From: Macrostomum lignano
Lineage: Eukaryota
Assembly: GCA_002269645.1 (NCBI GenBank)
Contig: NIVC01000001.1
Location: 620,001 to 684,000 of the forward strand
DNA length: 64,000 nucleotides
Reading direction: 5' to 3'
Positions 12,914 through 18,900 of the stretch are shown here, piece after piece. The translations under genes were made by a program, and so were the position numbers. The notes beneath the pieces are model-generated. The model had not been told where the DNA came from and did no database searches. It saw only the letters and a list, made by a program, of their open reading frames with translations. Position 1 is the first letter of the stretch. Each line of letters opens with the position of its first letter.

Positions 12914-15900
12914 TCAGACGATCTGGAGAAAAAGTTTAGGAGACGCGATTCCGTTAGGCAGGTGTGTCGCTCATGAAAATTCAATAATAAAAAGTTAACT
13001 CTATCAAAAATTATAAAATGGGTTGGTCCCCAATGTCCCGCGGACACCTCAAACGTCCCAGGTGGGTCAGGCAGACACCCTCAATGTCCCAGGTAGGTCA
13101 GGCAGACACCCTCAATGTCCCAGGTAGGTCAGGCAGACACCCTCAATGTCCCAGGTAGGTCAGGCAGACACCCTCAATGTCCCAGGTAGGTCAGGCAGAC
13201 ACCCTAAATGTCCCAGGTAGGTCAGGCAGACACCCTCAATGTCCCAGGTGGGTCAGGCAGACACCCTCAATGTCCCAGGTAGGTCAGGCAGACACCCTCA
13301 ATGTCCCAGGTAGGTCAGGCAGACACCCTCAATGTCCCAGGTAGGTCAGGCAGACACCCTCAATGTCCCAGGTAGGTCAGGCAGACACCCTCAATGTCCC
13401 AGGTGGGTCAGGCAGACACCCTCAATGTCCCAGGTAGGTCAGGCAGACACCCTCAATGTCCCAGGTAGGTCAGGCAGACACCCTCAATGTCCCAGGTAGG
13501 TCAGGCAGACACCCTCAATGTCCCAGGTAGGTCAGGCAGACACCCTCAATGTCCCAGGTAGGTCAGGCAGACACCCTCAATGTCCCAGGTAGGTCAGGCA
13601 GACACCCCACTCACCTCAGCAGTCCGATCAGCCCCATAGGGTTGGTGCACCTTCTGGTGCGGTCAAAGGAGCTGCCTCATCGCGGCGACCCGGTTTTAAC
13701 ACCAAAGCTCCTAAGTCGTGGTCTTCAACCCATCTGCCCTCGCGTGCCTTCGGCACGGCTGGCAGGGAGACCGGTTGTTCTGCTGCTGTCTATCTGTCCC
13801 GCCTCGTCCTCTTTGCGCTCGCCCTCACTACGCTTGCCGGGGACATCGAAACTAATCCCGGCCCAGCCTGCAACTCATGCAACGGCCCAATCCGCACGGG
13901 CATGCACAGCCTGCCATGTGAGGTCCAAGAATGTTCCGAGCGCTGTCACTGTCAGAAGAAATGCAGCGGTATGCACCGCGCCGAGATTGTCCGATCTCCG
14001 TGGCGCTGCTCTGTGCACCGCCCCCTTGAATTGGACTCGGCATCCGCTGCGCACCTGCGTGACCTCCCGGCACCCGAGCCCCGCATGTCTCAGCCAACGC
14101 GCTGTCACAGCTGCTCAGGGCCCATCCGCACTGGCACTACTCCGCTCACTTGCGCTGCCAAAGGTTGCGCTCTGGCCTGCCACCGCTCCAGCAACTGCAG
14201 CCACATCTCGCGGTATCGTGGCGCCCCAGCTGGCTCTGCCCTCTGCATCGGCAGCAGGCGGTCCAACTTCCAGGCGCACACTCCATCTTCCGCCGCCCTG
14301 CTCTTACCCGCAGACAAGCTGATCCCACTACCGACAGAGATCTGAACGATCCAAGCGACGCCCAGCGCCGCTACTGTGCTAAATGCTCGACCGCCATTCG
14401 CCGCGGCGTCGCGTTTGTCAAGTGCAACTCCTGCAGCGCCGCTTACCACAAGTGCTGCACCGGCCTTAATCGCAACGCCGCGGATGCCGCGGCTCGCAGC
14501 CCTTGGGACTGCCCAGTTTGCACAGCGCGCACCCAAGGAGCTCCCGCCCCTTCGGCAGCTACGTCGCGCGTCCCCCTGCAGGACAAGGTCGCCCGCGACA
14601 CTAAATTTGCCGACAGCCTCCGTCTTCTCCAGTGGAACGCCGACGGAATCGCCTCCAAACTGCCCGAGCTGGCCGAACGCCTCTCCGACAGCGATATCGA
14701 CATTGCAGCTGTCCAAGAAACGAAGCTCTCCAACCGCACGCAGCTGCCAAAGATCAACGGGTACATCGCCGTGCGCAAAGACCGCGGCGACGGCAGCGGT
14801 GGAGGTCTGCTGCTTCTCATCAGAGACAAGCTGGCCTTCCGCTCGTCCCCGCAACCCACGGCCACAGCGGACATGGAAATCCAGACGGTCGACATCCAGA
14901 TATCTACCGCTAACTGGATTACCATCACCAACGTCTATGCTCCACCTGTCCGCACCTGCGTCGAGGATCGACAGCTTCCGGACTGGAATCACCTGGGCAC
15001 TCCGTCTCAGGGCATCATCCTAGGAGACTTCAACAGCCACTCTCCGGCCTGGGACCCTATACAGCCCCAAGACGAACGAGGCTCCACGCTCCTGGACTGG
15101 TCCATCGACACGCAACTGGAAATCCTTAACGACGGCTCGCCCACCAGAGTCAATAAAGCCACAGGTGGCGAAAGCTCACCGGATGTGTCCTTCGCCTCCT
15201 CAAAGCTGGCTAGCAAATGCACCTGGCAAGTCTCCGATGACCTCGGCAGTGATCACACGCCGATTGTGATCCGCCTTGACCTCAAGGTTAGGACCTTGCC
15301 TAAGGCCCAAAGCCGTCTCATATGGCGCAAACAAGGGGTCGACTGGAATGCTTTCCAAACGGTCGTCGAGGACAAATTTAAAGCCCTTCACAAAGAGCAT
15401 CTTACCTTTGACGCCAGAGCCAAACGCTTTAATGATATAGTCATGCAAGCGGCAAACCTTTGCATCGGCAAAGTCCGTACCTCGCACAGACCGCGTCCCT
15501 GGCTCACCCCTGAACTCAAAGCGGCGATTAAGCTCCGTAACCGCCTCAGGCGCTCCGTTGGCGAGAATAGAGAAGATTGGCTCAGCGCCTGCGCCAACGT
15601 TCACAAAATTGCCAGGGCAACGAAAGAGGCTGCTTGGCGTGACACGATAACCGATCTTGAGAAAGAGCCCAACTCGAACAAGGCGTGGAAGTTCATCCGC
15701 AGCCTTAACGGCACTCCGGACTCCAACTGCCCTAATGAGGCCCTCCAGGTCGGCAACAAAGTGTTAACAGACCCTAGAGACAAAGCCAACGCCTTTGCCA
15801 AGCAGTACGCCTCTGTCAGCAGGTACCACATTTCCCATTCGGATCGCGCTACTATCCGAGAAGCCAAAGCCATCCTTCGGCTTCCCCTTCCGCTCCCAGG

Positions 15901-18900
15901 TTCGACCCACGACGGTTACGCCGCCATCACCGAGCAGGAACTGGACTCCGCCATCCAACACCAGCGTGCTAACGGCGCTGCTGGCGCCGACGAGGTCACG
16001 CCTCGGTTCATTAAGGCCCTTGGCCCGCTCGCCCGCGCAGAGCTGCTTAGTCTCTTCAACTGGTCCTTCCAGCACGCGGCCGTCGCTCAATCCTGGCGCA
16101 CCGCGATTATTATTCCCCTGCTCAAGGCTGGAAAGTCAGCTCGGGACATCGCGGCCTTTCGCCCCATCAGCCTCACATCCTGTATTGTCAAGCTGCTCGA
16201 GCGCATCCTGGTCACTAGATTGCACCACCTGGCTGAGCGCCACGGCTGGATCTCCCCGAACCAGGCGGGGTTTCGGGCCAACTACTCCTGCGAGGATCAG
16301 CTCCTGAGAGTCACCCAAGACATCAGCGACGGGATGAACCTCAAACCATCTGAACGCACGATCATTGCTCTGCTTGATTTTTGTAAAGCCTTTGACAAAG
16401 TGTGGCGTGAGCGCCTCATCACCGTTATGGCACGCAAACGCGTCCCTCTTGTCTTTATCAAATGGACTGCGGCCTTTTTGCGCCATCGCATTGCCCGCGT
16501 GCAACTCCACGGTGCTCGCAGCTCACCGGTTATCATGCGCCAGGGCCTCCCGCAAGGATCGGTCATCGCTCCGTTTCTCTTCCTTATTTTCATTGACACG
16601 GTCAATGACGTGGTCAACCCGCCGGCAGAGATCTCCATGTATGCCGACGACATCGCCCTCCGCGCCCGCCACCGCAACAAGCTCGAGGCTCAACGCGCTG
16701 TGCAAAGAGCACTCGACAACGTGGCCCGCTGGAGCAATGAGCACAAAATGGTCCTAAACCCAGACAAAAGCGAGGCCGCCTTTTTCTCCACGGACACCAG
16801 CGAAGCCGCCTGGTCCCCGGCTATCTCTATCGAAGGCCGGAACCTGCGGCACAATCCAACGCCTCGGCTGCTGGGCCTCACACTGGACCGCACTCTGAGT
16901 TTCCGCAGTCATCTGGAGCACGTGTGCAATCGGACCACTTCCCGATGCCGTCTCCTCGCCTGCCTGGCCTCCAAGGAATGGGGATGGTCCAAAAAACTCC
17001 TGCTCCGCATTTACCGTGCCATGCAACTTAGCATCATTAACTTCGCTGCGCCGGCCTGGCACCCTTGGCTCTCTGAATCCGCGTTTCAACAGCTGGAGAG
17101 AGCGCAGAACGCAGCCCTTCGTATTGTCACAGGACAACACCGCACGACTCCGGTTGAGGCCCTTAGGCTGGAAGCTGGCATCTGCTCCGTCCGCACTGGT
17201 AGCAATGTTATATGCCTGACGGCCTTCGAAAGAGCTCAGCGCCTCCCGGATTCTCACCCGTGCCGCATTGCCGCCACTGGAAACACAGCGCACAGGCTAC
17301 GCAGGAACAGTTGGCGGAACCACGTCACCGACCTGCTGCCACTCATTGCTAGCTCGGTCACGCCGCGCGCCATGATCTGCACTGCTCGTCCGCCGCCTTG
17401 GGACCCTTTCTCTACCGACGTGCGTGTCGACATGGCGTTGCCGGAACCCGGTCCCGCGCGCACAGCCACGGCCATCGACACTATCCGCCACCTCCCAGGC
17501 CTGATCACCATCTACTGCGACGGCTCGGCATCAGGCGGCACGACCAATGGCGGCGCCTCAGCCATCGTCACGACCGGTGACCCAGCCCACCCTATCATCC
17601 TGGCGACTCTTCAACAGCGCGGCGCGCCCTCCACATCCTCGTTCGAAGAGGAGCTTCGCGCCGCCTCTCTCGCCATCGGCTGGATCAACCAAGCTGCTCT
17701 CACCGCGGCTACCAACATCTGCTCAGACAGCCAATCTATGCTCCGCGCTCTGGCCAGCGGCAACCCCAGAATCAGATCTGCACTACCTACTGCATCTGCC
17801 GAAATCACCTGGCAGTGGGTTCCGGGCCACCAGAATATTCCTGGCAACGAGCTGGCCGACCAAGCAGCCAAAGAGGCCACCACGCTCGTGTCTCCCGCTA
17901 GTCAGATCAGCATCCACAGCGCCAAAAACGTCATCAGAAGATCCGTCCTCGATCCCCCGATACGCCACGAGCGCACCCGGCACGCGTACCGGCTTCTCAA
18001 CCGTCAATTGGAAGAGGACTCCATCACCAACCGTGCCGATGCGGTGCTTCTTGCGCGCTTACGCTCAGGTCACTGCACTCTTTTCAACGCGTATCGCAGC
18101 ATTGTCGACCCGGCCGTCGACCCAGCATGTCACCGCTGCGGCCATCCCTGCGATGACCTGGAACACTGGCTTGACTGCCCAGCTCTCGCCGGCACCAGGC
18201 TCCGCCTTCTTGGAGGACCCACGACAGACATCAGCAGCATTTCCGCCGACCCCCTCGGGTTGATAGCGCTGGCCAGACACTGCCCTTAGCTCTGCCTGGG
18301 CGCGTACCACCAAAACAACAACAACAACCTCAGCAGTAGCCCTATATCCGGAGTCCGTGGAGGGGAAAAAATCCTCAAAGTACTGCGCCAGATGAGCAAA
18401 GGTTGGCCGCTCCTCAGGCGTCTCATCCCAGCAGTTGAGCATGATATCGTACAGCTCCTCCGAGCAGTTGGCCGGCCGTGGCATCCGGTATCCGGTCTCC
18501 AGTTCCTGCAGAGTCTCCGTGTTGCTCATGCCGGGGTATGGCATCTGGAAGGCGGGGCGATGAGGGACATCAGAGCTGATTCCCCAGCATTACTGCGCTG
18601 AGCGCTACTCTAAACTAATGTCTACCTTCACGCTACTCTAAACTAATTGTCTACCTTCACGCTACTCTAAACTAATTGTCTACCTTCACGCTACTCTAAA
18701 CTAATTGTCTACCTTCACGCTACTCTAAACTAATTGTCTACCTTCACGCTACTCTAAACTAATTGTCTACCTTCACGCTACTCTAAACTAATTGTCTACC
18801 TTCACGCTACTCTAAACTAATTGTCTACCTTCACGCTACTCTAAACTAATTGTCTACCTTCACGCTACTCTAAACTAATTGTCTACCTTCACGCTACTCT

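Follow-up and report, generated by a model that had tools for sequence, protein, structure and literature searches.

Insertions of L1- and I-type retrotransposons, which lack long terminal repeats (LTRs) and are therefore called non-LTR elements, cause disease and mutant alleles when they fall at or near splice sites. The I group, which comprises the I, Nimb, Ingi, Tad1 and LOA types, carries an apurinic/apyrimidinic endonuclease (APE), a reverse transcriptase (RT) and an RNase H, and ends in a simple-repeat tail. Here, a non-LTR insertion is described from a stretch of 64,000 nucleotides of the Macrostomum lignano genome (contig NIVC01000001.1, positions 620001-684000, assembly Mlig_3_7, GCA_002269645.1), called the window below, to which all coordinates refer unless another locus is named. 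One copy of a Src-family kinase gene, Mlig028567.g2, was recently hit on its last splice donor by a non-LTR retrotransposon with a single open reading frame (ORF), and the kinase transcript now probably reads through into the element. The event is of a known kind, a clean retrotransposon hit on a splice donor, and it is expected in a repeat-rich, recently polyploid genome.

Insertion Site and Target Site Duplication

The element is flanked by two exact copies of an 11-bp target site duplication (TSD), ACCTCAGCAGT on the plus strand and ACTGCTGAGGT on the strand of the gene, located at 13613-13623 and 18327-18337. This 11-mer occurs exactly twice in the window, while shuffled sequences predict 0.04 occurrences and none of the 100 shuffles gave two or more matches. 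It is made up of the final nine bases of exon 7 of the kinase gene, which is encoded on the minus strand, and the GT of the following intron. The copy beside the 3' tail of the element (18327-18337) consists of the 9 nt with which exon 7 ends and the GT, and the copy beside the 5' end (13613-13623) reads ACTGCTGAG/GT on the gene strand (the slash marks the exon/intron boundary) and is followed by GAGT, which together give the ancestral strong donor. On the gene strand, exon 7 ends in ...GGA TAT AGG GCT ACT GCT GAG at 18329 and continues with GTTGTTGTTGTTGTTTTGGTGG from 18328, and positions 13623-13609 read ACTGCTGAG GTGAGT before the sequence enters a 31-bp minisatellite. Joining the flanks in silico (...GGATATAGGGCTACTGCTGAG/GTGAGTGGGGTGTCTGCC...) restored a perfect GAG/GTGAGT exon/donor junction. 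The ends of the element and the TSD are defined independently of this finding, since a second copy of the element starts and ends at the same bases within different flanks.

This anatomy points to target-primed reverse transcription as the route of insertion. The first-strand nick would have fallen between intron positions +2 and +3 (5'-GAGGT^GAGT) on the sense strand of the gene, where it is placed because the tail of the element adjoins the TSD at 18327. The terminal GT is complementary to the AC in the tail of the element RNA and could anneal to it. The second nick would have fallen 11 bp away, inside exon 7, and the element became fixed in antisense to the kinase gene. As to target preference, the two sites available (n = 2) are too few for a consensus.

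Src-Family Kinase Gene and Its Last Intron

The interrupted gene, BOX15_Mlig028567g2 (Mlig028567.g2), comprises eight coding exons on the minus strand, which were delimited by homology mapping and GT-AG junctions. Exons 1-6 extend over 18963-28251 (E1 28251-27791, E2 24123-24025, E3 22686-22583, E4 20789-20632, E5 20013-19609 and E6 19262-18963). In exon 7 (18329-18544), the kinase domain ends and is followed by the regulatory tail, ...STDSGY(576)RATAE, and the terminal coding micro-exon 8 (12914-12922) consists of ATC GTC TGA (Ile-Val-stop), preceded by the acceptor ttctccag, with the 3' untranslated region (UTR) continuing downstream. The exon model is validated by the fact that exons 1-7 together with the read-through reproduce the 668-aa GenBank protein PAA94767.1 residue for residue. 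Each of the eight exons has an open frame, and none of the catalytic motifs is damaged. No AATAAA or ATTAAA was present on the minus strand at 12500-12913, within about 400 nt past the exon 8 stop codon.

The protein contains the domains SH3_1 (127-173), SH2 (188-271) and PK_Tyr_Ser-Thr (312-563), and its N-terminus, MGGCVSR, is by direct reading a start of the myristoylation type (Met-Gly...Ser6). It aligns end to end with c-Src structures (PDB matches, e.g., 2src/1fmk) with an E value of about 1e-149. Tyr576, which is followed by R, falls over Src Y527 (LEDYFTSTEPQY(527)Q, i.e., LEDYFTSTEPQY527Q). The kinase thus resembles c-Src in its myristoylation start, SH3, SH2 and kinase domains, activation-loop Tyr and a tail Tyr at the position of Y527.

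The introns of the gene are mostly filled by tandem arrays of their own (31 bp x18, 29 bp x10.5, 19 bp x16.6 and (TGTC) x148), located at 13043-13607, 18603-18906, 19280-19593 and 20036-20613. The 31-bp minisatellite, with 18 copies at 13043-13607, fills the ancestral intron 7, whose acceptor, ttctccag/ATC GTC TGA, lies 692 nt past GAG/GTGAGT and gives the protein end ...YRATAEIV. The closest other M. lignano gene, Mlig033327.g1 (BOX15_Mlig033327g1, locus L001), whose kinase domain is 74% identical, ends in a similar way in its RNA-seq-based model: ...YRLATQDQ/GTGAGA, an intron of 582 bp, and ttttgcag/GTC GTG TGA (Val-Val-stop). In both genes, the regulatory tail is split by a minisatellite intron followed by a two-codon exon (VV in the one, IV in the other). 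The donor of Mlig033327.g1 carries no retrotransposon, and a single exon takes the place of exons 6 and 7; the gene is an old paralogue and not a homeologous copy. As the two-codon terminal exon is common to both paralogues, the boundary at exon 7 is regarded as real, and GAG/GTGAGT is a genuine 5' splice site. The minisatellite in the last intron of Mlig033327.g1 (about 11540-12090 of L001) has an unrelated 33-bp unit but occupies the corresponding place, and AAATAAA is found about 80 nt after its stop codon.

Structure of the Retrotransposon

The element spans 4,703 bp (13624-18326, plus strand, antisense to the kinase gene) and consists of a 278-nt 5' UTR, an ORF and an (ACA)n tail. Its domains are, in order, a zinc-finger-like N-terminus, AP endonuclease, RT, RNase H and a C-terminal CCHC motif. 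The main open frame of 1,379 codons (14150-18289) contains the APE at residues 160-372 (Exo_endo_phos and Exo_endo_phos_2), the RT at 668-888 (RVT_1, E = 6e-31) and the RNase H at 1119-1243 (RNase_H, E = 2e-12). An N-terminal piece of 147 codons (13902-14345) is out of frame with the remainder through a 1-bp deletion, located in a run of four C residues (14224-14227) that has five in the second copy; the difference reflects either a real frameshift that disables the ORF or a miscounted homopolymer in the long-read assembly. The A-rich (ACA)n tail occupies 18312-18326, and its complement provides the TGTTGTT that now follows the GT of the exon. The long ORF between the TSD copies is 100% identical to the M. 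lignano protein BOX15_Mlig029675g1, and GenBank annotates a coding sequence (CDS) for a 1,138-aa RT protein at 14873-18289 on the plus strand.

The second copy, on contig NIVC01001951.1 (locus L002), matches the first at 99.8% identity, begins and ends at the same bases, with CCGATCAGCC again at its start, and sits in an unrelated (CAG)n target; its tail is two ACA units longer. It forms a single ORF of 1,462 codons from the ATG that corresponds to 13902. The element family appears to be very young, as the two copies differ by only nine substitutions and one 1-bp indel over 4.7 kb. The (CAG)n microsatellite around the second copy (about 9700-9722 and 14427-14445 of L002) means that its own TSD, of up to about 17 bp, cannot be delimited. 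The exact 1,138-aa RT product was found on this contig only, and no duplicate of the insertion with the same annotation came to light, a weak negative.

No long direct or inverted terminal repeats and no LTRs were found in the interval 13624-18326. An LTR element or provirus was ruled out by the absence of terminal repeats together with the APE-RT-RNase H order of domains. The element is classified from its sequence as an I-like non-LTR retrotransposon, the kind that carries an RNase H, with no named clade assigned. It shares with the I group the APE-RT-RNase H order, the C-terminal CCHC motif, the absence of LTRs, TSDs of variable length and a tail of short tandem repeats instead of poly(A). 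Unlike the I group with its separate ORF1 and ORF2, the intact copy has a single ORF of 1,462 codons with Cys-rich N-terminal motifs; the tail unit, ACA, also differs, and the closest proteins outside M. lignano, which come from metagenomes, are only about 40% identical to the element ORF. A paper on M. lignano LTR elements contained nothing on non-LTR elements, and the identifiers Mlig028567, Mlig033327 and Mlig029675 were not found in the M. lignano papers that were searched for them.

Splice Donor Strength and the Annotated Transcript

The insertion left the GT on exon 7 and replaced the following GAGT with TGTT, so that most of the complementarity to U1 was lost. The present 5' splice site, GAG/GTTGTT (18323-18331, minus strand), gives a U1 duplex of -4.2 kcal/mol, and the displaced ancestral site, GAG/GTGAGT (13609-13617, minus strand, donor at 13614), gives -11.9 kcal/mol. 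GTRAG is kept in 7/7 native donors of the gene, whose U1 duplexes range from -5.5 to -12.5 kcal/mol, and the new site is weaker than every one of them. Several random GTs in the read-through stretch pair with U1 as well as the new donor does or better. Two weak cryptic GT donors lie in frame at 18305-18313 (minus strand; TTG/GTGGTA at 18310 and GTG/GTACGC at 18307); splicing from them to exon 8 would place VVVVVL or VVVVVLV ahead of the terminal IV. If spliced, the last intron would now measure 5,406 nt instead of 692 nt. On the gene strand, several further GTRAG sites are present deeper in; the best of them is the old donor at 13614. The only poly(A)-like hexamer on this strand of the element is ATTAAA at 15433.

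The ORF that runs from 18544 to 18065 encodes 159 aa, 87 of which, starting with VVVVVLVV, come from the antisense element. The extension itself (18065-18328, minus strand; 87 codons and TGA) lies on the strand opposite to the final part (3' end) of the element ORF and belongs to the CDS of PAA94767.1. The 668-aa read-through product matches PAA94767.1 (A0A267HB99, BOX15_Mlig028567g2) exactly; in GenBank, the CDS at the locus begins at 28251 and takes the read-through form, with its stop at 18065. The GenBank locus of this protein, once reverse-complemented, is identical to positions 8065-38251 of the window. At 18065-18289 (225 bp), GenBank therefore has two overlapping CDSs, one for the kinase read-through tail and, on the other strand, one for the 3' end of the element RT/RNase H ORF. 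By exact look-up, the spliced 583-aa product was absent from the protein collection, and no match was obtained for the 159-aa read-through ORF, the ORF of the empty site (...EVSGVSA), the spliced 74-aa form or exon 1. The annotation was derived from stranded RNA-seq with StringTie (--rf), TACO (isoform-frac 0.75), TBONE boundaries and TransDecoder ORFs, and isoforms with distinct CDSs were kept (PMC5730564). Judged from this annotation, the main transcript of Mlig028567.g2 would skip splicing at 18329, read into the antisense element and stop at 18065.

Most of what the initial annotation had claimed for this locus held. Its 11-bp TSD on the boundary of exon 7 and the intron has the correct coordinates and sequences, is exact and occurs only twice in the window, and the spanning of an exon/intron boundary agrees with the same arrangement in the paralogue Mlig033327.g1. 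The description of the insert as a retrotransposon antisense to the gene was borne out by the APE, RT and RNase H domains, the tail and the genuine TSD. The exon had been said to abut a weak donor, and GTTGTT is the weakest in the gene by U1 duplex; the strong GAG/GTGAGT said to be stranded at 13614 behind the antisense element was found at 13617-13609, and the acceptor proposed at 12922 (ttctccag/ATC GTC TGA) is present. The predicted in-frame tail of 87 aa, VVVVVLVV onwards, is identical to the C-terminus of the deposited PAA94767.1.

Probable Redundancy of the Kinase Locus

The Mlig_3_7 assembly holds three paralogous subgenome copies whose SNP divergence is about 2%, or 1.1% within coding sequence, large indels accounting for most of the differences between them (PMC10733133), a structure that fits the homeologous copies guessed at in the initial annotation. 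A shared gene-name prefix denotes transcripts at least 95% identical (PMC5730564), so the suffix g2 implies that a g1 copy should exist. UniProt entry A0A1I8IX03, from the ML2 assembly, is a 268-aa fragment with the same N-terminus (with S30N) that reads into intron 3, and it is probably another subgenome copy of the same kinase. The 90% cluster of the kinase is represented by this N-terminal fragment and not by the full-length PAA94767.1. Because the genome holds three paralogous subgenomes, the insertion is probably buffered by paralogous copies.

Evaluation of Alternative Explanations

Read-through is likely to be the main product of Mlig028567.g2, as far as public annotation taken at second hand allows; it is favoured because the RNA-seq-guided CDS is the 668-aa form and the 583-aa form is not on record. 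It is rated no more firmly than likely because the STAR mapping allowed 1,000 multi-mappers (PMC5730564) and the exon 7 model could have been lengthened by antisense reads from elsewhere in the element family, with no read truly spanning the junction. Several further points weigh against it: a minor isoform with correct splicing would be lost to view through the TACO isoform filter; reads of the exon 7/exon 8 junction could have gone to other copies of the gene; the U1 5' end used was the conserved metazoan sequence, which may differ from that of M. lignano; the redundancy at this particular locus is one that we infer; and the 668-aa protein and its behaviour are predicted from the gene model alone. 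The same mapping settings speak for the view that the insertion is neutral, which we nevertheless consider rather unlikely. In that case, the retained GT at 18328 or an in-frame cryptic GT (18310/18307) would be spliced to exon 8 across the 5.4-kb intron, the product would be the normal 583 aa or 6-7 residues longer, and the annotated read-through would represent multi-mapped antisense element reads. The GT and exon positions -3 to -1 (GAG) have been kept, weak GT donors in frame are available at two points, 18 and 21 nt downstream, and an intron of 5.4 kb is not extreme, the average in M. lignano being 1.1-1.4 kb. However, positions +3, +4 and +5 of the new site do not fit GTRAG, the motif kept by all native donors, the U1 pairing of this site is below that of every native donor and no better than that of random GTs nearby, and no 583-aa product is on record even though distinct CDS isoforms were retained in the submission. 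It is unlikely, to a greater degree, that this copy is a duplicate on its way to loss, whether silenced, removed by nonsense-mediated mRNA decay (NMD) after splicing from 13614 to 12922, or affected by convergent transcription, and tolerated thanks to the other copies. Loss would suit three subgenomes that differ mainly by large indels (PMC10733133), and the RT gene, annotated as expressed in GenBank, is convergent with the kinase CDS and overlaps it at 18065-18289. Moreover, use of the old donor would put the stop at 18065 about 4.4 kb upstream of the last junction, which is the classical NMD configuration, and transcripts reaching that donor would be NMD candidates. On the other hand, the eight exons are open, the catalytic motifs are intact and a transcript-based gene model exists for this very copy; with an insertion as young as nine substitutions per 4.7 kb suggest, the lack of other decay is uninformative either way.

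The two remaining explanations concern the anatomy of the site itself. If there had never been an intron, the ancestral CDS would have run six codons further (...EVSGVSA, then stop), and the element would have disrupted the end of the CDS or the 3' UTR. The joined flanks do give an in-frame stop six codons past GAG, at a distance from the Tyr that is acceptable for a Src-family tail. This explanation is nevertheless highly improbable, given that the boundary is a perfect GAG/GTGAGT, that a minisatellite follows it as in the other introns of the gene, that a good polypyrimidine acceptor leading to IV and a stop is found 692 nt on, and that the RNA-seq-annotated paralogue Mlig033327.g1 splices at the homologous position to VV and a stop. 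Wrong placement of a repeat in the contig is hardly credible: the assembly is indeed repeat-rich and redundant, with 93% of read pairs mapping to multiple loci (PMC10733133), and the homopolymer difference within the element could be a sequencing error, but an exact TSD at independently defined element ends, with flanks that rejoin to a perfect donor, is the signature of retrotransposition.

Predicted Effect on the Protein

In the read-through protein, Tyr576 and the following RATAE (Y+1 to Y+5) are unchanged, and the terminal IV is replaced by 87 residues from Y+6, which gives 668 aa instead of the 583 aa of the spliced form (...ATAEIV). Csk recognises Src kinases largely via the kinase domain, and v-Src is deregulated because Y527 is missing. 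The read-through product shares with v-Src a foreign C-terminal sequence; unlike v-Src, it keeps the Tyr and the next five residues and is foreign only from Y+6. As these residues are intact, constitutive activation is not predicted. Likewise, there is no specific reason to expect a loss of autoinhibition, because the residues near the phosphotyrosine that SH2 reads are unchanged and Csk reads mostly the kinase domain. The suggestion in the initial annotation that the tail could alter Csk-type autoinhibition found no support in this analysis, and any such effect of the tail is speculative. More plausibly, the hydrophobic start and the long, probably unstructured extension lower the stability of the protein. 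The net effect would most likely be a copy that is neutral or has reduced function, by way of a tail that is unstable or misfolded, a long 3' UTR or NMD, and a kinase with changed autoinhibition is less likely than this. It is very unlikely that the 668-aa chimera is translated and persists as a new, stable isoform whose tail alters the docking of the regulatory tail on SH2 or the location of the kinase; if this were true, it would be a first step in the neofunctionalisation of one homeologue in a recent polyploid. The antisense-element tail contains, 22 residues in, the motif QRYQPEG (18251-18265, minus strand), which resembles the Src motif PQYQPGE, probably by chance.

Neighbouring Genes and Repeats

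Three neighbouring genes on the minus strand were recognised in the window. The gene at 34392-35793 encodes a PRELI-domain protein, for which a 236-aa product was reconstructed, and that at 2178-3619 encodes an NAD-dependent epimerase/dehydratase family protein. The gene at 42232-50066 combines patatin-like phospholipase and cyclic-nucleotide-binding Pfam domains and, from these two domains only, is presumed to be possibly similar to neuropathy target esterase. A perfect simple repeat of 1.2 kb, which reads (SIYL)n in one frame, occupies 4217-5446 in an AT-rich intergenic stretch. No Rfam match was obtained in the 12-29 kb part of the window.

Significance and Comparison with Known Insertions

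If the read-through reading, which we hold to be likely, is correct, a single insertion gives one copy of a signalling kinase a different C-terminus, and the locus offers a resolved and datable case of a mobile element that is starting to differentiate duplicated genes in a neopolyploid animal. For the users of databases, PAA94767.1 / A0A267HB99 contains 87 residues of antisense retrotransposon, and the 583-aa form is advised for phylogeny, knock-down design and structure. A near-intact and apparently very young element also matters for a model organism with stable transgenesis and inbred lines.

The insertion resembles splice-site alleles caused by L1- and I-type elements in the features of target-primed reverse transcription, in its short TSD and in a splice signal that is weakened or displaced, and the possible outcomes are likewise read-through, cryptic splicing or loss of function. 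It differs from them in that the nick fell between +2 and +3, so that the GT was kept on the exon and the intact donor was carried 4.7 kb away. Moreover, the exon that follows here is a terminal one of two codons, and read-through costs only two native residues. Finally, the insertion differs from those alleles in its host, whose recently polyploid genome has spare copies.

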